Assembly (NCBI GenBank): GCA_964270895.1
Contig: OZ185452.1
Length of the DNA stretch: 64,000 nt
Strand: one strand, 5' to 3'
Origin: Podarcis filfolensis
Lineage: Eukaryota
The translations under genes and the position numbers were made by a program. Under the pieces are notes generated by a model that was not told the DNA's origin, did no database searches, and was given only the letters and a program-made list of their open reading frames with translations. Shown piece by piece: positions 651 to 49,960 of this stretch; the stretch's first letter is position 1; each line of letters opens with the position of its first letter.

Positions 651-2879
651 AGGGCAAGGCAAATCACGAGTCTTTCGCGTCGAAGCGCGCGCGCTCGAGG
701 GGGGGAGGAGCCCAAACGCGAGCGTTCCTCCCCCCACCCCACTCCCGCTTCTAATAAATTAACGACACCGCGCGTGCGCCTTGGGCTGAAGTGCGCGCGC
801 GAGCAGAGGGGGCGGAGAGAGAGAAAGGGGACGAAAAAGCAGAAGAGTCCAAGCAAAACAAAAGCCAGGCGAGGGGGCGGGGCGGCGTTAAACCTGAGCG
901 CGCGAGGGGGGTCGTGAAGGAGGAGAGAGTGGCGGCGGCAACCACGACGACACCGGCGACCGAAGGACGAGCAGGATGACTTCTCGGTCGCTTCTGGGCC
1001 CTGAGGAGAGCGGGGGGGCCCGGCTCGGGAGCAGCAGCGGCGGCGGTTGGCGCTTTCTATGACCCCCCCCCTCTCCTCCCTCACAGGACACACAAGCCCA
1101 CCCACCCCGCTGCCCGCCTCGCTTCGGGGCATGGTCGGCGGCGCTCGCTGAGGAGGCGGCGGTGGCGGCGCGACCCTGGCCCCCCACAGCAGGTAGCCAC
1201 CCTCCACGGCCGCTTGGTGGTCCCCTGCCCTTTTTTCCCGGCTGGGACGAGGAAAGAAGGAAGAAAGGGCGACTGGGCTGTGTGTGTGAGTTGGTGTTTG
1301 GCGGGGGGGGGCATCTCGATAGGGTGGGGGATACGCTCCCCACACATTCCAGGGTCTTGTCTCCCTCCCTCCCCCTTCTCTTTCATTCCTCCCCCCCCCA
1401 AAAAAAAACCACCTGAGGATTGTGAGGAGTTCAGGTAATCCTTCCTGGAAGGGTTGTCACTGATGGGCAGGATCAGTTTATAATTGGGGTGGACTTGTCC
1501 TTTCCTCCTCCCCAACATTTGTGATCCAAGAGGTATTTTTTGGGGGGGGTGAACTTTGGGGCTGATGACGATCCCTTTATCTGTATGGTTGCCTCTGTTG
1601 AAGGGAGGTAGGGTATTTATATTGTGTGTGTGTCCGGTCAACTTCTTTATTGACTATATTTTCATATTCCCTGGAGGTTCAGAGGGGCTTACAGCAACTT
1701 CCCAAAATGATGTTTGTTGTTTGGGCGATGATATCCTGCCTCTGCTTAACCAGCCTCTATGTAAACCAGCCAAGGCTTTTGAAAATATGAACAGGCTACA
1801 GTTCTACTGCTTATGTACTCAAAATCCACACTCAAGTTCAGTTATTCCCAAGGTGTAAGTATGTAGGATTGCAGCCTAGGAAGACAGCAACAGTAATACA
1901 AAAGGACAGGGAAGCAATTGCATTCAGATAATGAGCATCTGACAAACAAAAGTGTTATAAAAGTAATTCAGAAAAATATATAAAAAATACTCTGGGATAG
2001 TGATGGCCTTGACTAATACTTATTAATTTGCTAATAACTGCAATGTTTATATTCTATTGCATCCTCTTGGCAGAGGCAACTTACAGCAATTTCAACATCA
2101 TCTGATCTCTTGGAGCCTCTTAAGATGAGAACCTTAAGTAATGTGGTCTGTTTGGCCTGAGGAGAAAGAATTATTTTATTTTAAAAAATTTCCTCAACTT
2201 ATTAAGTGATATTATGAGCCTCGTACTAGTCCTTGAGTGCTAGATTTATTTACTTGAGTTTTTTTGGTGTCTTGTTGTGACACTGAAAGTTTAGAATGGC
2301 TAAAACCAATTTTAGTGGCGTCTGTGGGCCTCATGTCTCTTCCAAGGGCTCACCGTTAAAAGATAAATAAATCCTGAACAAAAGAAGAGAAACCTCCAAC
2401 ACATGGACTAAAAGAATAGTTGTTTTTCTATTTGCTGTAGAAGGAAAAGAATTGTGCATCCTTGAGAAAGGTCTGATCAGAGCTGCTAGCCAGGGACTCC
2501 TGTTACCAGTTTGTCTCAAATGGAAGTCCAGTTTCTTAATAGAATTGCTATAGGTGAGTGTGTATTGGAATGTACTCTGCACAGGCTCAGAAACCCAATA
2601 GCATGCAACTTAATGCTTTGTATGTTCTAGAGTTTTTTTAGATTCAAATTTAAGCATCAGTTTGCATATACACAAAAGGCTCCCCTCTTCCTTCTCCCTT
2701 GTTCGAGCAGTCTGAGAAAGGAGTGCAGGGGGATTTGGCTTTTGCAGCCTGTGGAGGTAATAGGGGACACAATAGCCTCCATGAGGGTTTTTTGTTTAGA
2801 AAGAAATTGTTTTGCAAGATGGGTGTTGTTGTTTTTAATTAGCGTGTTACCGAGAGGGGGACAAGAGCTTATCCTAGCC

Positions 2880-3860
2880 AATTCAGTTCTGTAATCTTCT
2901 GTATGCGTCGGTGATTTAATTTCCTTCTCACGCTCCGCACTCCCTTTGCCCCTCCATCTTTCAGGGCTGCGCACCACAAGGGCGGTATGTTTACCCCTGA
3001 TCATAGCATCTCAGAAATTCCCTGCAAGATGCAGGCGGTCCTTGAGCCTGTTATCTGGGGCAGTAGAACAGTAAACATCTCTGGGTCGGTTTTGTGTCAC
3101 TCTGCCTCCGCAAGCTCTTTGTCGGTTTGGAGCTGGGATGCGGGGGGGGGGGCGTTTTGTTTGCTGCTCGGATTCGCACATTTTTCTAGGACGATCGTGC
3201 TGAGCAGCTGGGGGGGGTCGTCTATACGTGCCGCCCCTTCTGCAGTTTCTTGTGGTTTTGGAGCCTGCTAGGCTGCTATTCAATGGCTCGAACAAGTAAG
3301 CTCCAGAGGTAAGGGGATTTTCGTTCAGCTTCAGCTGCAGAACCGGATCTGTTTTGCTTTGCTTTGTTTGTGACTGCATGCTGGCTTGCTCTTTTCCGTC
3401 AGCCCTCGAGGCTTTTTCCTCGCCAGATCTTTCGCTTTCATTGATTTAACCGCAGAAAAGAGAACTTGCCCTTTCTCCCCCTCCCCTTTCGGTTTCGTGG
3501 TGGTTGGAATTCGGGGCAAAGTGGAACTGGAATTCTGGCTCGAGCTGATCGCCCTGCGGCTGGACAAGGAAATGAAGCTGGAAAAACACCTTTCCTCCCC
3601 GACCTTGTGCCAGAACTGGACACCCCCACCCGGGGCAAGTCGAAGCCAGCGTGCTTCGCTGGGCTCTAGGTCGACCCCACCGGGGGCGCTCAGACACTGT
3701 TTGTAAACAGTGCCAGAAAGTGAGCCGTTTGCAGCCGCCGTTGGCCTTTTGTTTTGATCCACCGGGCTCGGACTGGCTGTGGCGGGGGCTGGCTGCTGCT
3801 GTTGTGGGTAGGCTGGCTGGGACTTTGCTGCTGCACGTCCGTTCATCTCCCCTCCCCTCC
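2880..3860 (+). promoter_or_regulatory. Second CpG-rich island in YPEL1 intron 1 (possible alternative promoter/first exon)
   Basis: Local CpG/GC enrichment against AT-rich flanks; donor-like CAA|GTAAGC at ~3295. Confidence 0.55.
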
Positions 3861-6800
3861 TCCGTGCTGTATTGTCCAAAGCAGACTGGAGGTGCATGTT
3901 TATTTTTAGAATGTTGCTTCTCGCAGTGCCCTTGCCTTTCTCCATGAAAAGTTGCCTTTTCCACAAGGCTCCGAACCCATTGTTTCTACACTTCAGAGGA
4001 GGAACAGGCAAAAGAAAGGGTAGGAGGAGATGTTTTGGTTAAAATCAGAGCAGGCAGTGATGTTTTGCTTTGTGGTCTGAGTGTGTGGTGAGTTTTCGGT
4101 TAGAATACTCTAACAACAGCCCATGAAAGTGAAAAACAAATCTGCACAAGTCTTTTGTATCTGGTTATTTTAGCATTGTTTGAAGTTTAGTAAGGGTGAG
4201 GTCTATTAAATGGTCTTATGGAAATGTGTTTTCACAGAAGCCACTTTAGCACTGTCTACAATGCAGCAACATCTATTTCTGTTGTATACATTTGATGCAG
4301 TCTGGATTGCTGGTGGATGAAAAAGGTTCTTTAGCGCTAACAGACTTCATGGGAAAGTCCAAGACAGGAAAACAAGATTTATCTTTCTGAGTTCTTGGTT
4401 ACTGTTAATGGGGGGTGGGAAGCAACTTAGCTTCAGTTAAATGAACAATTATCCAGCCACATTTTATGTGTCTTACATAACAAATCTTAGGGGTTTTAAA
4501 CTTAGCAAAAACCAACTGTGCATGTTTCTTCAGAAATAAATACTTCTCTGCTTATTTCAGCTTACTCTCAGATAAGTATGGATAAGGGTATAACCCCGAT
4601 TTTTGTAGTTCATATTTAATAGAAGCCCTTTTAGTAGCTTGGTAAAAACACGAATGAAATTAAGGCTTGTTATAGTACAAAACCTCTATAAATATAATGT
4701 ATGAAATAGCAGTGGGACATGCTGTATAGTAGAATCAAATGACCTGTTGCTTGTGTTCCTGATAAAAGCTATTTAATGGTTTGAGAATATCTTAATATTC
4801 TGTAGATCTGTTGTATGCTGATAACGTTCTGTTGCAGCAAACATGCTTAAATATTTGTTTATACATCCGGGTGCAGAATTAGGACAGCCCACTATGCTTA
4901 AGATTGGCTGCTGCTTGCCTACTAAAATTACGCTTTCCTTCAAATGACATCATGCTGGTAGACAGAAGAGCTAACATTGTATTCATTCAGTGTACGAATT
5001 GTAATATCACATGAAAATAACACTTATTTATCCATCTAATAAAATGGGTAGCATGTTCAACTGGGAGTAGCAAGGGCATGATGAAAATGAAAATTGTGTC
5101 TTAATTGCGTCTAGAATGAATGTTTGAAAAAACATATGTTTTTGAGAAAACATATGAAAAAACATATGTTCCAATGCTTGAACCTGTTTTCACATGGGGC
5201 TTGGCAGAGAATATCAGATTTGTACAGCATGCCCTTGTGTATAGTTAGTATTTTAGGAGACAAAACTCCTTTAGTGTTGTGAAATGGAATGGGGGGGGCT
5301 TGGGTAGTTGTTATTACAATCTCAGTCAGATTTGCTGACACATTTAAAAGGGTAGTCTTTTCATAGTTCAGTAAATTTGAGCTCTACTGTATTTTCATCT
5401 CTCTCTTTTTGGTACTTCTGTAAACCTCAGGATTCGCCCACACCTGTAGTGTGTGGATGGTGCTGTTTTGGTTGCAGTAGGTATGACAATTCATGTAGGT
5501 CTGTTTCAAGGAAACTACTGTTGTTTGTTTGTTCCTTTCTATATCACAAAACTGAAAGCTATGCAGTGTACAATATGACTTCGGTTTAAAACCAAAGCAA
5601 CATAACAAATACAATTGAACCAAACTACATTAAAAAAACAAACAAACAGAAGCACAGAATGGGTCATCTAACAAGAAGGTTCTAAAAAACAAGTTAATCC
5701 TTTTCATCAGAATGCTCCCTGAAATAATCAAGTATTGGTGCCTAAAACTCATTATAGTTGGTGCCAGCTTGATTTAATTAGGTAGACTGCCTATAAACTG
5801 GGTGCCACCACACTAAATGCACAATCTGTCACTGCCAGGCTGATTGCAGATATCAGGGAAAGGTATATGAATAGTACTTAATCAAGGGTTCAGAAATCCT
5901 TGGCTTAACTTGTTAGGCAGTTGTTATCCTTGAGCCCTCCGTTCCCCTATATCTTCTGTCTGTGCCTGTGGCGGCGGAGTTTGGGAGGAAAAAACTTTGT
6001 CTTGAAGATTTGACAGATGGCTCAGTCTTATGCAACAGCCCAGTCAAAAATACAGAAAGACCCAACCCTTGATTCCAGTGCTTTATAAATGCTTCCAGAG
6101 ACTGTGGGGAAGCACTGAGAAGGTCCCATTGCTTTTTCTGAAGATCTGTAAAGGATGAAACAAGACCTCCCCCCCCCCCTGCTCCGAAGTTATCTGTGCA
6201 TGCCAAAGAATATGGGAGGGGTCTATTCATGTTTCATTTCTCACAGGATTTTTGCAGAATGCAAAACTCTCCACAAAGGAAGTGCAAAGGGAAGCATGTT
6301 CCTCCATGTTCTCTGCAGTTCCTCAAGAACTCAGGGAAAGGACTAGTCAGCAGAGGGAGGATAGGGGTTATTGCACTTCCTTGCACCACTGGGGGGATCT
6401 TGTGCATCCCTGGTCTTAGTTAACAAGAAACATAATTGTGACACTCTGCACATAAACTTTAAAGTAGGATAGTTGAGAATTGATGAGTTTACAAATTTAA
6501 ACGAACTGTAAACAAAAGTTAAAATGAAGCCAGATTAAAATATCTGAATGTAAAACAAAAAACATTATGTCCACAAAAATAATCCTTTAAAACTCAATCT
6601 GTGACATTATCACATGCATTGAAGCATGTAAACTATTTTTATTGATTTTCAACTTACAAAACACAATTAATAAACTTTAAATGTGCTGCCATTGGCAATA
6701 CAGCATTAAAATTCCTTTAGAATTCCCTTCTCTCTCTCTAAGAACTGGATTAATTACTGCCATTGATTTTAATAAATTTAATTTTGAGATTTGATTTTAG

Positions 6801-8437
6801 GTGACTGCCTTGCCTCATGTTGCTACCTTAGTTCTGCAAGGCACAGGCTCATTAATTTTAAGAAGGTTTGTGAATCCAACATTATATCTAATTATACATT
6901 TATATTGTCCAAAGACTGAATTACTGCTTTCTCCTCTTGCCCACTCCCCCATTTATCTTGTTACAGGAATTATTCAGCCACCACTATGACTGAATAATTA
7001 ACCAGAGGCTCAGATCAGTCACTGTAACTAACCATAGTTTAGGACCTAAACTATGATTTGAGCTTCCAAATATTAAACAAGCACTTTTATGGTTTAGAAC
7101 TGTTTACTATGGCCCTCCTTTCTCCCAGCATACAAGTTCACAATTTCATTTCCCATCTCTTTGCTGAAGCAGCCTCTGTAGTGACACCCATATAACACCA
7201 GTTTTTAGAATTCAGACATTGCACCAAACTATGGCTTGCAAACCCCATATTACCTTAATGGTTGTCTCCTGTTCTTATTTGCTGTTTCTGGCTGCATAAT
7301 ATATGGTACTGCATTGACAACAGTCCTTTTTGGAGGGAGTTATTGTTTACACTTGTTATTGCTACCACACCATAATCTTTGTGCCTTTCTAATTTTTACT
7401 ACCAATGGAAAATCCCAGTTTCTTGACTGTCCTTGTTGAAATTGATAAAGAAATGGTTAAAATGTTGATAGTGTTTTCCCACCTCTATGTTCACTCAGAT
7501 TGATTTATTATGGGATACTGCATTGGTACTAGATGTCTGTGGTCTCCAGACCTTAAGTTCATTATTACATATTAGAATCAAATGAGACCACCCTGAAGCT
7601 CGAGAATCTGAAGTGAATGTGTCTCTTGCTTCAGCTGGCTGATAATGAACAGAGGTTTATGAGTGTCGGGCATTCATGGAGTGATACCGTCTGCCAAACT
7701 TCTGGAAATTATCTTCCTTTTGAGCAGCAGTATTTCTTATAGAAAGCTGTTTGAAGAGGCTACACTGCAAAGTTTTTGAATCCACATAGTTCAGTATTTA
7801 TTTGGGCTTTGGCTGTGTTTAAACATCCTTATAAACTATGGCTTATTGTGATGGAAATGAGCCAAGTGAGCCTTGGACTCATATGCTCCCTGTCTTTCCC
7901 CTCCTTCTCCAGTGTGGCTGCAAGTTGCTTGTTTCATTCAAACCTGACAACCTGTGGTTAACTATGGTTTGATTTAAACAAACAGACTTCAGAATGCACT
8001 TACTTTGTGGGGAACCTATGGGCAGAAAGTTTCATAGCTGGCCTACCCAGCAACTATTTTGTGTTGGCTGAGTGGAATGTTAGTTACGCTTGCCTTTTGT
8101 TCATCCAGCTGTTTTACCACCCTTGAGTTTCCAGTGCTTGTGTTAGCATACAGCCCTCTGTTGCAGTGTTCCCATCTCCCTTTTGGATGGGAGGTTGGGA
8201 GCACCTCAGTATTACAGTGCAAGAGTAGGGCCCCTCCTCTCCTCTCCCATGTAGGACTCTGTGGCATATACATGCAGGCACGATATTTTAACAGGGAGCA
8301 ACACTGCATGTAACTTAAGGTACCCATTTTATTTTAAACTTACACTAATGAGGAAATGGAGAAGTTAAATGTTTAATTAGGAATATGTACTATAAAAAGA
8401 CTTGAAGTGGCTTATATGCTTCTTTCTTCCGTTGCAG

Positions 8438-8603
8438 GTTTTGATTGTTTCTTCTGTGGCGTTTGTGTGGAAGCTGCCACACACACTCCAGAACAACAAC
8501 GGCTTTTGCTTGCATTTTCCAGTGTTTCTTTTGTCAGCAAGTTCAGCAAAGTTGTAATTCTTCAAGTGCCAGCCCTGATCAGAGTGAAGAACTGGCCACA
8601 GAG
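8438..8603 (+). other. YPEL1: YPEL1 5'UTR part of the first coding exon
   Basis: Acceptor TCTTTCTTCCGTTGCAG|G ending at 8437; no ATG in these 166 nt before the ATG at 8604. Confidence 0.8.
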
Positions 8604-8720
8604 ATGGTAAAAATGACAAAATCCAAAACGTTCCAGGCTTACCTACCAAACTGTCATCGGACCTACAGTTGTATCCACTGCAGAGCCCATCTAGCCAATC
8701 ATGATGAACTAATTTCCAAG
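8604..8720 (+). CDS. YPEL1: Protein yippee-like 1, coding exon 1 ([39 protein letters not shown])
   Basis: Matches the YPEL1 N-terminus as I recall it (TKSK...PNC rather than YPEL2 TRSK...PSC). Kozak gagATGg. Donor is AAG|GCAAGT. Confidence 0.97.
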
Positions 8721-9320
8721 GCAAGTGGCCTGTCTCTAGACCTCATGAATGCATGATCTGGTGCCTGTTTGTAACTGCCATAATGAGACAAAAAGATACA
8801 CCAAAAGCTATGTGTTTCAGGGTCTATTAGAAATACACTGCATAAGAATTTACATAATGTATTTCCTGATTACATTCTGTTTGTGTTCAGGTGCTACTTC
8901 TTGAGGTGTGTTTGTTCTCTTCTCAGGCCGGAATGATGTGTAATTGATATTTTAAAAGAAGTGCTCTTAATGTGAAGCACATTGATCAGGGTTGTGGTCA
9001 CTTGAGGTAATGTGACTAACCTGCTTGTTTTAGTTTGTTGCATGATTCTTCTAAAGAGAATCACTGTGTAACTTACACTATGTTCAAATGTTAATGTGTT
9101 CTTAATATTCAAGTACAGAAGATCTAGTATGCAGACATGAAATCTAAACCAACTAGCCAGCCATGTGAAGAAAATAGTCAATGGATTGAAGTATGCAGAG
9201 ATGTATATCTGGTCAGTTGAAAAAGAAGGGTGGGTGGGTTTCTTCTTCTGTGTATGTTCTGCAGCTAGACCTGTCCAGTGAGAGCATTCCTGAAGTGAGG
9301 AAGCATGCTTTTCAAAACTA

Positions 9321-9535
9321 CAGTGGTACCTCGGGTTGCATACGCTTCAGGTTACAGACTCCGCTAACCCAGAAATAGTGCTTCAGGTTAAGAACTTTGC
9401 TTCAGGATAAGAACAGAAATCGTGCTCCGGCAGCAGGAGGCCTCATTAGCTAAAGTGGTGCTTCAGGTTAAGAACAGTTTCAGGTTAAGAATGGACCTCC
9501 GGAACTAATTAAGTACTTAATCCGAGGTACCACTG
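9321..9535. mobile_element. Tc1/mariner (Tigger-like) MITE, family T1
   Basis: TIR CAGTGGTACCTCGG...CCGAGGTACCACTG with TA on both sides. Confidence 0.9.
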
Positions 9536-10994
9536 TACTTTCTTTTGTTCCTTGTTTTCCCCTTTATGCATTCATTTGAAGGACTTTTGGTAACAACTGT
9601 GAATCAAGGCTCTTCTTTGAGATCTGTATATATGAAGAAACCTCTCACCAGGCAGTTTTCCCAACTCCTATGCAAAGATTTGGGAGTTTCTATGTTTCTG
9701 AACTGAGAGACCATATTCTCCCAAGCATATATTCATATTCACCTGTTCTGTATCCACTCTTCATGTGCATTGGGGAGGAATTTGGACCTCGGGAAGAGCA
9801 TCATCTAATATTCAGATTTTCCCTCACAGCAATGGGGTCTCTCATGATTGCTATATGCTGCGATCTACATGCATATATTCTGAAGAGTATGCATTTGTTA
9901 GCAGTTGCTACAGCACTGGTTTGTGCTGCAGATTTAAGCTTACCACACAGAAACACAATAAAGGAAAAATGACAAGAGAAATGCTCCCTCCACTGATTTT
10001 TCTTTCTCCCCCTCACCCCCAGCCAATTTTGCATCAAAATTAAGGGAATAATTTTTTTAAACAAAGTATATTCTGTAAAGAAACCTCATATAATTTTGTA
10101 CTTCCTGTGTGTTAAAAATAGTATTGTATTCTCAGGTAAAAACATAATAAACAATCTACTAAACATTAAAAATGGTTTCAGACTGACAATTTGTCTAACA
10201 CCCATCTTCTTTAATTGTTACAAGTTTAGTATACTGTGACTAATAAGTTGGTGGGACAGGGTCATGTAACTGTAATTAAACGTACTTAATTAGGTTAATT
10301 GGTATAGTTTTTAGATGACAAGAGAGAGGTGAGGGTTTCCGCTACAGTTATGGATTTTTTCAGTGCCTGGTTTTCCTAATTAGGTATGTTCACAAGACTG
10401 TGATGGGATGAAAATTGAATACATAGCAGTAATTTAAAGGTGTAAATGATTGGGTATGCCTGTTTTAAAAACAAACACTACAGTGCAATTAGTTGACTCA
10501 CTGTTGCCCTTAAAATAAAACCAAACACTCCCTGGTTTGCAAACTACGTGGCATGGTGATATGTGAATCACTCACGCTGCTGAAAAGATGGGAGGAAGAT
10601 TGCTTTCCAGTGTATCTTGCAACGCACCAATTCTGGTGCTCATCCGGAATTCCTGTTTCTTCCAGCAATGAATATTGGAGGGCAGATTTCCTAGGAACTC
10701 CCACTATTGCAGTAACATACTGGGTAACCTTCCAAAGAGAGCTATTAGCAGCTTAGCTTCAATCATCATGCACTGACATTGAAACAAATATTACTAATTG
10801 CCGAGGTGTGTGTGTGTGTGCACGTTGCACACAAATGGCAATGGCTAGTGGATGGTACAGATATGTGTGATACTGTGATTGTGTTGCATACAAATTCTGT
10901 AAAGAAGGGGTGTAGCACCTTGTGAATCTGATCTTACTGGCTTAGCTTCATTTCCCTCCCTCTAGCCCTCCCACAGGCTATTTATTTGCCTGAA

Positions 10995-11212
10995 TAGTGG
11001 TACCTCAGGTTACAAACACTTCGGGTCACAAACTCCGCTAACCTGGAAGTAATACCTTGGGTTAAGAACTTTGCCCCAGGATGAGCACAGAAATCGTGTG
11101 CCGGCGCCAGCAGGAGGCCCCATTAGCTAAAGTGGTACCTCGGGTTAAGGACGGTTTCAGGTTAAGGATGGAGCTCCGGAAGGAATTAAGTTCGTAACCT
11201 GAGGTACCACTG
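10995..11212. mobile_element. Tigger-like MITE, family T1 (older copy)
   Basis: Same internal sequence as 9321-9535; ends and TA sites mutated. Confidence 0.85.
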
Positions 11213-11714
11213 CAATTTTTAATCTTATTTTTTATTCAACTGCAAGACCATTTTACCCTGCTTGATGTATATTGGACATGGGACTTGTTAATAGCTCTTG
11301 AACAATTAAATAATATGAATCACAGGAGCCAATACTTGGAAAGGCAACTAAGCTGTAATAAAACAGGCACTAATAAAATTCTTAACCCTGAGTATTATAA
11401 GTAACAATAACAACTTATGGCTATAAGCCATAAATTTGTGACTCACAATTTTGCTGTTTGCTGCACATCAGTATTTTGGCACACGTTTTCTCAGGCACAG
11501 CATATGTTAAAATATATGGTGTAACTTTCTCTGATCTCTTCTGACAGGGTGGTAATGAAAACCAAATGAAGTAATCTTGGAAATTTTGCAGGTTTATGGA
11601 ATAGACATCATTTTACAGCCATTTTTATGTATTCAAATTCCTGTTTGAGATCTGTATTCCCCTTTGACCTATTAGGTAGCAATGATGATGAATTCAAGAG
11701 GTTAATTTCAAGTA

Positions 11715-11961
11715 CAGTGGTGCCTCGCAAGACGAAATTAATTCGTTCCGCGAGTCTTTTCGTCTTGCGAAGCACGGTCCGTCGCAACTGCGCCTCTTCA
11801 AGCGGCTTTAAGAAAAAAGGGAACAAACTCGCAAGACGTTTTCGTCTTGCGAAGCAAGCCCATAGGGAAAATCGTCTTGCGAAGCATCGCAAAAAACGAA
11901 AAACCCTTTCGTCTTGCGCGTTTTTCATCTTGCGAGGCATTCGTCTTGCGAGGTACCACTG
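11715..11961. mobile_element. Tigger-like MITE with internal CGTCTTGCG repeats
   Basis: 22-bp TIR with 1 mismatch, TA TSD; several internal copies of the sub-terminal motif. Confidence 0.9.
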
Positions 11962-12149
11962 TACTGTATATATCTAGGAAGTCTAGGAAGGTGCTTTGAT
12001 ACAATTGCATTCCATATGAATACAATGTGGGTTCTAGGTGGTGCAGAATCCCATCTCCTCCTGTACAAATTTGCATGTAGTGCGAAAGGGGCTGTCACCT
12101 CCTGTTTTTTTCTGCTCGGCATCTGGTACTCTGAGGAGAACTATTAATA

Positions 12150-12333
12150 CAGTGGTACCTCTGGATGCGAACGGGATCCATTCCGGAGCCCCGTTCGCAT
12201 CCTGAAGTGAAAGCAACCCGCGTATGCGCGAGCGGCGAAACCCGGAAGTAACGCGTTCCGTTGCTTCCGGGTCACCGCGGAGTGCAACCCGAAAATGCTC
12301 AACCCGAAGCTACTTCAACCCACGGTATGACTG
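12150..12333. mobile_element. Tigger-like MITE with asymmetric ends (CAGTGG/CAGTCA)
   Basis: TA|CAGTGGTACCTC...GGTATGACTG|TA; related to 58936-59195 in the opposite orientation. Confidence 0.85.
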
Positions 12334-12841
12334 TATGGGGATTCTTATTTCAGATTTTAAAAATGGATTGTACCACTGTGTAGCTGGAGGTTCCTAAGGG
12401 TTGGTGGCATCTGTTTCAGTGAAACTTGTGAATGCTCTAGCTCATGATAATGTTAGCATGTTTATGTGTTACTCTATCCTTTATCAATTCTTCCATTTAA
12501 CTGTAAATGGACACAGACATTCCTTCAGGAATTCTGAATCTTCCATATGTGATACTTTTTAGCATCATGGACTCTAGAGTCTTTGTGTCTCTGCCATCTA
12601 CACACCGCAACATTTTCTGCCACTTAGTTAACAATGTTTCCAGGACTGACAGTGTTTGAAATAAAAATAATTATTTAGGAATAGTATACATGTTGTATTA
12701 AATTTCTGACCTATGTGAACTTTTACGTGCTCTATAATGGCAATCCTGCTGAATCTGGGCATTCACCAGGTCATAAGTAACCGCATAGAGCTTATTTGTA
12801 AGAGGTTGCTAGATAACTGCTAGGAACAGTTTTACTGAATA

Positions 12842-13072
12842 CAATGGAACCTCGGGTTGTGAATGTGATCCGTGCAGGAGGCATGTTTGCAACCTGCAGC
12901 GTTCGCAGCCTGCAGCGCCGCATCTGCGAACACGTAGATCGCGATTTGGTGCTTCTGTGCATGCGCAAAGCACCAAAACCTAGAATCAACCTGTTCCGGT
13001 ACTTCCGGGTTTGGCGCAGTGCGCAACCTGAAAATGCGTAACCTGAAGCGTCTCTAACCCGAGGTACCACTG
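12842..13072. mobile_element. Tigger-like MITE
   Basis: TA|CAATGGAACCTCGGGTT...AACCCGAGGTACCACTG|TA. Confidence 0.85.
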
Positions 13073-13340
13073 TATTACCATTTTGTCTCAGATTGGTTCC
13101 TTCTGACTTTGTTCACTAAGAACATTCTCAGATTCATATTATCTCCTTGATGGCCTGATAGCTTAGCACAAGAATTAAAGACTAGCTTTAGTTGGCTTTT
13201 TGCAGGGAAGGGGATCTGTTTTTTTAACCAAAAAAGGGAGCCAGCCAGATTGGTAAAATGGGGAGAGGAGGACCTAAGACTTGCTGCTTGTTCTGGTGGC
13301 TTGATTCTAATTTGTTTCCTGCTCCCCCATTCATCATCTC

Positions 13341-13520
13341 CCCTTCAGACAGTGCTTGACCCAGGGGTGCCAACTTGAATAATATATTGGGGCAGGTGAG
13401 ACACCCCCCCCCCCCACATAATCGATCACATGACATAGTGCGCACACACCATTTGAATGGCAATTCCTATTTATTTATTTTATTGGGGGGCAAAGACCCT
13501 AGGGGTTGGCTCTCCAGACT
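13341..13520. mobile_element. Degenerate hAT-like MITE
   Basis: Starts CAGGGGTGCCAAC and ends ...GGGGTTGGCTCTCC; no clean TSD. Confidence 0.4.
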
Positions 13521-14420
13521 CATTTTTTAAAGCACCAGTTATAACTGAGTGTCAATTTTAAATCTCCAGTTTTAATTGTGTCCCTTCTAACACATTAGAA
13601 CCCTGTAGTGGGGTGGGGAGCACTTTGACAGCTTCACACACACACCCCAACTTGAAACTCTAATAACTCAAGAGCCAAATGGAGAATGCCCAGTGAACTC
13701 GTATGTTTTCTAGTTATCCAATTTTAATTTTCTGTAATCCTATACAATTACACCTGTTGTCATTTTTTGGCTTAGTTTAGGGAATAATGGCCAAAGTTAA
13801 TTAAAAGCAAAATTTATTTAAAACTTATTTAGCTTACTAAATAAGCAACACAGAAAAGTAGAGGGCAAAGTGAGTGCAATAAATTATTGAGAGGCAAATC
13901 CATGTATTTTTCACATGTTTTATTTCAATAATGTTTCAATAATGTAAGGTAGACTGTTACTGTCCCCATATTACTGATGGGGAAGGAAGAGAGTGGATTG
14001 CCTTAAAACAGTGTGTGTTAAAACAGGTAACCCCTATAGCTAAGGTTTTGAACTGTGCCAGATCTTTCTTTGCTATACTACGTTATGTTAATTATCATAC
14101 CTTTTCTTTTGTCTATTGCAGCAGTGTCAGACACTGTTGGCTTAAAGAAGGCACTATACCTAGCAGTAGCTGCACAAACACTTGGGGAAAGATTTGGTTT
14201 TGAGATTAGAGCTTAGACAATGAGTTTCCAGCCCCATGTGGCAGATCGGAAGAATAATTACTTGGAACAATACATGCAGCTGAATTTGCACTTAACATAC
14301 AATGTACTAGTTTCAAAGTTCAGGTGGAATGCTTTGATTTGCCTCTTCATTGAGACAATGTTTTAGTGTTTTTTTAAAATATATATATATATATGTATAT
14401 GTCTTTTTTTTCTTTTACAG

Positions 14421-14464
14421 TCCTTTCAGGGAAGCCAGGGGCGAGCCTACCTCTTTAATTCAGT
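14421..14464 (+). CDS. YPEL1: YPEL1 coding exon 2 (SFQGSQGRAYLFNSV)
   Basis: Acceptor TTTTCTTTTACAG|, donor |GTAAGT; 44 nt, frame continuous. Confidence 0.97.
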
Positions 14465-15987: not shown

Positions 15988-16096
15988 GGTGAATGTGGGC
16001 TGTGGTCCTGCGGAAGAGAGAGTTCTTCTGACAGGCTTGCATGCAGTAGCAGATATTTATTGTGAAAACTGCAAAACCACTCTTGGATGGAAATAC
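15988..16096 (+). CDS. YPEL1: YPEL1 coding exon 3 ([36 protein letters not shown])
   Basis: Acceptor (CT)n-TTGCAG|, donor |GTAAGC; 109 nt; contains the second CxxC of the Yippee zinc fold. Confidence 0.97.
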
Positions 16097-24861: not shown

Positions 24862-24993
24862 NNNNNNNNNNNNNNNNNNNNNNNNNNNNNNNNNNNNNNN
24901 NNNNNNNNNNNNNNNNNNNNNNNNNNNNNNNNNNNNNNNNNNNNNNNNNNNNNNNNNNNNNNNNNNNNNNNNNNNNNNNNNNNNNNNNNNNNN
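24862..24993. other. Assembly gap (132 N)
   Basis: Run of N. Confidence 1.
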
Positions 24994-40457: not shown

Positions 40458-40813
40458 AAGGTAAAGGTAAAGGGACCCCTGACCATTAGGTCCAGTCGTG
40501 ACCGACTTTGGGGTTGCGGCGCTCATCTCGCTTTGTTGGCCGAGGGAGCCGGCGTACAGCTTCCGGGTCATGTGGCCAGCATGACTAAGCCGCTTCTGGA
40601 GAACCAGAGCAGCGCACGGAAATGCTGTTTACCTTCCCGCCGGAGCGGTACCTATTTATCTACTTGGACTTTGACGTGCTTTTGAACTGCTAGGTTGGCA
40701 GGAGCAGGGACCGAGCAATGGGAGCTCACCCCGTTGCGGGGATCCGAACCGCCGACCTTCTGATCGGCAAGTCCTAGGCTCTGTGGTTTAACCCACAGAG
40801 CCACCCGCGTCCC
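40458..40813 (-). mobile_element. Sauria/Squam1 SINE
   Basis: Full length with (ACCTTT)n tail; TSD-like GAGT..ACAATA. Confidence 0.92.
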
Positions 40814-40915
40814 TGAGTTGACAATACTGGGGGCTAAAAGGCAAACAGTCTGATCTTGCCTACGTAACAAAGATGCGGAGCAGTTTCACTTCTCAAGTTC
40901 AGTCGCACAACTCAC

Positions 40916-41055
40916 GCTGCAGCTATGTTGATGTACTTCCCGACACCCTCCCGGTACGTCTTCGGAATGTGCTGCTCCTTCTTTGGGACGACGACTTTGG
41001 TCTTCTCCTTGGCTGCCTCCTCCTCTTGCTGGGCCTTCTCTCTCTCTTTGGCAAC
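40916..41055 (-). CDS. PPIL2: PPIL2 exon (VAKEREKAQQEEEAAKEKTKVVVPKKEQHIPKTYREGVGKYINIAA)
   Basis: AG/GT boundaries; 140 nt; GVGKYIN motif; frame joins both neighbours. Confidence 0.95.
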
Positions 41056-49760: not shown

Positions 49761-49960
49761 NNNNNNNNNNNNNNNNNNNNNNNNNNNNNNNNNNNNNNNN
49801 NNNNNNNNNNNNNNNNNNNNNNNNNNNNNNNNNNNNNNNNNNNNNNNNNNNNNNNNNNNNNNNNNNNNNNNNNNNNNNNNNNNNNNNNNNNNNNNNNNNN
49901 NNNNNNNNNNNNNNNNNNNNNNNNNNNNNNNNNNNNNNNNNNNNNNNNNNNNNNNNNNNN
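49761..49960. other. Assembly gap (200 N)
   Basis: Run of N. Confidence 1.

Follow-up and report, generated by a model that had tools for sequence, protein, structure and literature searches.

Non-AUG N-terminal extensions have already been described for the YPEL genes themselves. In Ivanov et al. (2011, NAR, PMC3105428), YPEL1, YPEL2 and YPEL4 are listed among ten genes in which the extension as well as initiation at a non-AUG codon is apparently conserved in all vertebrates, and the three are treated as an ancient paralogous cluster of such extensions; the listing to which the earlier note on the present DNA refers does exist, as one of non-AUG extensions. Among the 24 genes with annotated non-AUG starts in GENCODE v35 are YPEL1, with an extension of 35 codons, and YPEL2, with one of 33 codons (2022, Nat Commun, PMC9789052). 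The human YPEL2 extension displayed a positive PhyloCSF score and was supported by Ribo-seq, whereas the human YPEL1 extension had a negative PhyloCSF score among mammals and too little Ribo-seq coverage (PMC9789052). Deeply conserved near-cognate starts that have alternatives next to them also occur in DDX17, TEAD1/3/4 and EIF4G2, where the codon is likewise conserved and in good context, no AUG lies between it and the main start, and the two proteoforms coincide at the C terminus; these are unrelated genes with unrelated peptides, the YPEL1 extension being short and Cys-rich.

The locus considered here lies in a window of 64,000 nucleotides from the lizard Podarcis filfolensis (GCA_964270895.1, contig OZ185452.1) and is very probably, judging from sequence comparison, the lizard ortholog of this known vertebrate-wide extension of YPEL1. 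Gene, exon and the length of 35 codons are the same as for the human extension (ENST00000672036), but in the squamate ortholog the extension is not annotated. The extension has been known in vertebrates since 2011 and the lizard case is an unannotated ortholog; the description of the extension in the earlier note as usually unannotated no longer holds for human, where GENCODE annotates the 35 codons. What is added here is a fish–tetrapod codon test, a frame-breaking indel just upstream of the start, a tandem ACG in teleosts with a compensated loss in an icefish, a putative conserved leader hairpin, a constraint on synonymous sites and the upstream open reading frames (uORFs) of exon 1.

Gene structure and reading frame

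The four coding exons (Table 1; the first from position 8604) encode a YPEL1 protein of 119 aa that is identical at 118 of 119 residues to an icefish YPEL1 (P0016, residues 53–171), itself a PF03226 (Yippee) protein, and the fish matches are named 'yippee-like 1' at NCBI. The lizard gene is identified as YPEL1 by its exon structure and protein identity. The acceptor AG of exon 2 occupies positions 8436–8437. The proposed ACG start and the AUG, itself in a strong context, are in the same frame at a distance of 105 nt, and no stop codon was found in this frame between 8499 and 8603, nor any ATG in any frame between 8438 and 8603. The frame is closed upstream by a TGA lying in exon 2 close to its start, and a second open frame (from 8440) spans the entire leader. 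The predicted long form consists of 35 + 119 = 154 aa. All of these positions, distances and extension residues agree exactly with those given in the earlier note, in which an ACG with A at −3 and G at +4 had been proposed as the start of a conserved 154-aa proteoform of YPEL1.

Table 1. Features of the YPEL1 locus, in window positions.
Feature	Position	Strand	Basis or description
Exon 1, 5' UTR	934..1192	+	CpG island; 3' end exact, 5' end minimum; X9/X13 contigs
YPEL1 exon 2 = first coding exon	8438..8720	+	acceptor AG; X9/X13 contig junctions; X23 splice reads
In-frame TGA, exon 2	8442..8444	+	window sequence
Putative 7-bp hairpin	8464..8483	+	stems 8464–8470/8477–8483, 6-nt loop; ends 15 nt before ACG; non-coding leader
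ACG, proposed non-AUG start	8499..8501	+	context acaACGg, 8496–8502
N-terminal extension, 35 codons	8499..8603	+	hydrophobic, Cys-rich head; Ser-rich middle; acidic tail that varies
Annotated AUG of 119-aa YPEL1	8604..8606	+	gagATGg; assembled protein
YPEL1 coding exon 3	14421..14464	+	splice reads; assembled protein
YPEL1 coding exon 4	15988..16096	+	assembled protein
YPEL1 last coding exon incl. stop codon	18462..18551	+	assembled protein

The degree to which such a pattern could arise by chance was estimated from 5000 dinucleotide-preserving shuffles of 8438–8603. Of these shuffles, 38% had a frame open for 35 codons or more, 17% had a strong-context near-cognate codon inside the open frame, and 20% had no ATG in any frame; all three features combined occurred in 2.3%. 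Taken singly, the pattern in this sequence is only mildly unusual, and its significance derives from the comparison between species and not from the single sequence.

Comparison between fish and tetrapods

A word search of a large protein collection with the translated leader (8445–8603) retrieved 17 proteins (E-values 1e-17 to 5e-4), most of which are teleost YPEL1 models with a wrong start. One of the 17 came from a tetrapod, and the named ones were teleost YPEL1 models or raw ORF calls crossing the region. Over about 26 residues after the ACG the peptide was near-invariant in these 17 proteins, and was followed by a variable acidic tail. Only YPEL1-type peptides were matched by this leader, YPEL2 and YPEL4 being genes that are listed together with YPEL1 as carrying non-AUG extensions.

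At the DNA level eight sequences were aligned, namely the window, one distant tetrapod (L001, alignable only over the exon plus 30 nt, at 89% identity) and six teleosts: an eel (L007), a fish (L008), an icefish (L009), a catfish-like fish (L010), a percomorph (L012) and Tetraodon (L015). The sequences L001–L006 represent one tetrapod, seen on only 7 contigs, and none of the contigs used in this comparison is regarded as human. In the extension core (27 codons from the ACG, 8499–8579), the variable columns at codon positions 1, 2 and 3 numbered 1/27, 1/27 and 15/27, respectively (Fisher test of position 3 against positions 1 + 2, p = 2e-7), a distribution that agrees with that of the main coding sequence in the same exon (3/39, 1/39 and 31/39; p = 1e-16). 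The 61 nt of the exon upstream of the ACG displayed no such periodicity (6/19, 5/19 and 8/20; p = 0.56). By the Nei–Gojobori method, the core of the window differed from each fish by 7–12 synonymous and 0–2 non-synonymous changes, corresponding to changes at approximately 0.5–0.8 of the synonymous and 0–0.03 of the non-synonymous sites, and the non-synonymous/synonymous ratio of the extension against fish was approximately 0.01–0.02. Every indel between the ACG and the ATG was a multiple of three, giving extensions of 35–37 codons in the eight species. By this comparison, strong purifying selection acts on the 35 codons, which change in the manner of protein code, and the reading of the earlier note is supported. 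A clear coding signal is thus obtained between fish and tetrapods, in contrast to the negative PhyloCSF score of the human extension among mammals. When the two tetrapods were compared with each other, the core contained 1 synonymous and 2 non-synonymous changes, so the coding signal within tetrapods is weak. Of the features by which Ivanov and co-workers (2011) recognized non-AUG extensions, an in-frame near-cognate codon with an open frame up to the AUG, a low Ka/Ks, frame-preserving indels, an upstream in-frame stop and conservation of the near-cognate codon with its context were observed.

The 5' limit of the conserved frame is set by the indels upstream of the ACG, which are one of 3 nt and one of 2 nt. 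The latter, located right after 8483, sets tetrapods and fish in different frames, and the conserved frame must therefore begin within the five codons before the ACG. Only 15 nt (CAC TCC AGA ACA ACA) separate this frame break from the ACG, and none of these five codons is near-cognate in this genome, which leaves the ACG as the sole near-cognate codon of the interval. Translation of the extension from another codon, either upstream (CTG 8454, TTG 8445 or TTG 8463) or downstream (ATT 8514 or CTG 8592), appears improbable. These near-cognate codons are in frame, CTG 8592 has G at −3 and G at +4, and non-AUG extensions often use several starts. The upstream candidates, however, have a pyrimidine at −3 and T at +4 and lie in a region with neither a frame shared with fish nor codon periodicity. 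The coding signature already takes in the codons next to the ACG, whose conservation would have no explanation if translation began at 8514 or 8592; position 8592 is, moreover, variable among species and among the squamate relatives. Initiation at the ACG itself, and its ratio to initiation at the AUG, are what we infer from the sequence.

In terms of meaning, the YPEL1 extension represents protein code that has stayed near-unchanged for more than 400 million years, as confirmed with independent sequences, with a start that can be pinned to the ACG by the frame-breaking indel just upstream. YPEL1 models of squamates, other tetrapods and fish should carry a non-AUG proteoform of 154–156 aa. Six of the fish models (P0002, P0004, P0006, P0011, P0014 and P0016) reach the extension via invented upstream ATGs or by reading through an intron, and are probably mis-annotations of this non-AUG proteoform.

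Conservation of the ACG and of the leader

The ACG was found at the same alignment column in seven of the eight species, and an ACG with A at −3 and G at +4 was present at or next to this column in all eight. The exception at the column itself was the icefish, which has GCG there and an ACG one codon upstream, likewise in this context; the change of the second ACG to GCG in this species is what gives the first ACG its G at +4. The teleosts carry a tandem ACG-ACG at the column of window positions 8496–8501, where both tetrapods have ACA-ACG, an arrangement that recalls the tandem ACG-GUG reported for DDX17 by Ivanov et al. (2011). Of the outcomes that the earlier note had named as evidence against its proposal, a loss of the ACG or of its frame in other squamates was not observed; the ACG, its context and the frame were kept in squamate relatives, the distant tetrapod and teleosts.

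Conservation at this locus is not confined to the protein. Nucleotide invariance peaked over 8464–8538, a block that straddles the ACG and reaches into clearly non-coding leader, and a part of the conservation is therefore not at the protein level. In addition, third positions of the first 16 codons of the extension were less variable (6/16) than those of the main coding sequence (31/39; p = 0.004). These observations, namely a leader highly conserved before the ACG despite its broken frame, an invariance peak across the ACG and under-varied synonymous sites after it, together with the negative PhyloCSF in mammals, are those expected if the region were an untranslated 5' UTR element conserved at the nucleotide level (an RNA structure or a protein-binding site), with the open frame and the ACG as by-products. 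Such an interpretation is nevertheless very unlikely, since a purely RNA-level constraint does not predict codon periodicity and third positions account for 15 of the 17 variable columns of the 27-codon core. It is also at odds with the indels, which are multiples of 3 between the ACG and the ATG, as against 3 and 2 nt upstream, and with the effect of reading the core in the +1 frame, where every change becomes non-synonymous.

The predicted hairpin located in the non-coding leader (Table 1) retained 7/7 pairs unchanged in 8/8 species, with 4/6 loop positions variable, and the folding energies calculated for four species ranged from −10 to −11.6 kcal/mol (z-scores −1.0 to −2.6). Essentially no covariation was detected in the consensus fold (term −0.17), so this conserved hairpin is put forward as a hypothesis. 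The fold of the whole leader had no extra stability compared with shuffles (z = −0.37), and a scan of 8300–8800 against Rfam, with E up to 10, returned chance-level matches only. A downstream hairpin of the Kozak type was also considered; its stem (8508–8513/8537–8542) was invariant, but its z-score of −0.43 was not significant and it was rejected. Tentatively, and with the odds rather against it, the invariant block of approximately 75 nt (8464–8538), which holds the invariant-stem hairpin and extends over the synonymous sites of low variability in the first 16 codons, might be a dedicated cis-acting RNA element by which the ratio between initiation at the ACG and at the AUG is set or regulated, perhaps together with the uORFs of exon 1. 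If this were true, the choice between ACG and AUG would be a regulated switch and not a fixed leak.

Squamate relatives, exon 1 and the route to the ACG

The exon was found in many organisms by a search of sequencing runs, and one raw RNA-seq run (X23) and contigs of three other squamates were compared with the window over 2900–8899. The ACG and its context were unchanged in the contigs of the three relatives. Across the four squamate runs the exon showed no more than three differences, C>T at 8592, C>A at 8597 and G>A at 8603, each of which is synonymous in the frame of the extension. Few differences were present in the intron as well and the relatives are close, so this squamate test of conservation has little power.

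In the same material both the exon 1–2 and the exon 2–3 junction were seen in RNA. In transcriptome contigs of two relatives, X9 and X13, a GC-rich sequence of 255 nt is spliced onto the start of exon 2; it matches window positions 1159–1188 and ends at 1192, with a donor GT at 1193. Four RNA reads of X23 splice from 8720 to 14421, and the orientation of the mates was consistent with transcription of the + strand. The exon structure assumed by the earlier note is right.

Exon 1 lies within a CpG island (1–1500) and contains three upstream ATGs, at 976 (28 codons), 1059 (30 codons) and 1131 (6 codons, GGCATGG). The resulting uORFs stop at 1060–1062 and 1149–1151 and none runs beyond exon 1; they end 102 nt ahead of the ACG in the spliced leader, in which the ATGs at 1059 and 1131 are in frame with the ACG and stopped at 1149–1151. 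These data bear on the possibility that ribosomes enter the extension after starting at an upstream AUG, which would lie in another exon or be joined by way of an alternative acceptor, as in some automatic fish models (killifish, catfish 'isoform X2'). Models P0002, P0006 and P0014 indeed start at upstream ATGs and read through the region, and the in-frame TGA near the exon start is absent from the eel and catfish-like sequences. In the lizard, however, the TGA at 8442 closes the frame within exon 2, those ATGs of exon 1 that are in frame run into the stop at 1149, and in contigs of two relatives exon 1 is spliced to the usual acceptor. The distant tetrapod (L001) and three percomorph fish (L009, L012 and L015) likewise have the in-frame TGA, and an upstream AUG is accordingly regarded as an extremely unlikely source of the extension.

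Under initiation at the ACG, a minority of scanning 43S complexes would recognize the codon at 8499 in its optimal context (A at −3, G at +4) and start there with initiator Met-tRNA, yielding the 154-aa proteoform. The remaining complexes would scan past it, meet no ATG and start at the AUG at 8604, yielding the 119-aa Yippee-domain protein. The 255-nt contigs of the relatives suggest that the transcription start site (TSS) lies upstream of the three exon 1 ATGs, in which case, if these ATGs are used, part of the ribosomes would come to the ACG through reinitiation. Given these three upstream ATGs, the leaky scanning proposed in the earlier note probably does not, in its simple form, account by itself for how ribosomes arrive at the ACG.

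The extension peptide

In the invariant head of the extension, three Cys in a C-x3-C-x2-C arrangement are interspersed with Phe and Ile, and a fourth Cys lies eight residues farther along; residues 1–12 have a hydropathy of approximately 2.1, and the head has no basic residues. Behind the head follow a Ser-rich stretch and the acidic tail. From this composition, S-acylation and membrane tethering of the long form can be guessed at with low confidence. A literature search found no paper tying YPEL proteins to palmitoylation, and a search for YPEL together with other non-AUG work found nothing specific. An AlphaFold2 model of the icefish long form (13-row alignment) had a mean pLDDT of 34.5 and was all-helix for a known beta fold, and was discarded.

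Other features of the transcript and the window

The donor of the intron that follows exon 2 is GC (8721–8722) in the lizard and in L001, and GT in all six fish. RNA reads of a relative ran on into this intron (8721–8899) at a depth of 9–11, compared with 13–16 over the exon and at most 2 over the upstream intron, and branches into the same intron were present in contigs of three relatives as well. The frame that reads past the GC donor stops after 11 codons, at 8754. Such read-through may represent a retained-intron or alternative 3' isoform with just the first 39 residues of the Yippee domain. A single transcriptome contig of a relative (X13) joins 8720 to 9582, with an acceptor AG at 9580–9581, and matches window positions 9582–9608; the alternative exon meets a TAA after three codons (9591–9593) and, on this one contig, looks like a poison or alternative terminal exon. 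Elsewhere, the window contains two runs of N, at 24862–24993 (132 bases) and 49761–49960 (200 bases), and a second bin resembling a CpG island at 40501–41000 (GC 0.56, CpG observed/expected 0.87), which is possibly the promoter of a neighbouring gene.
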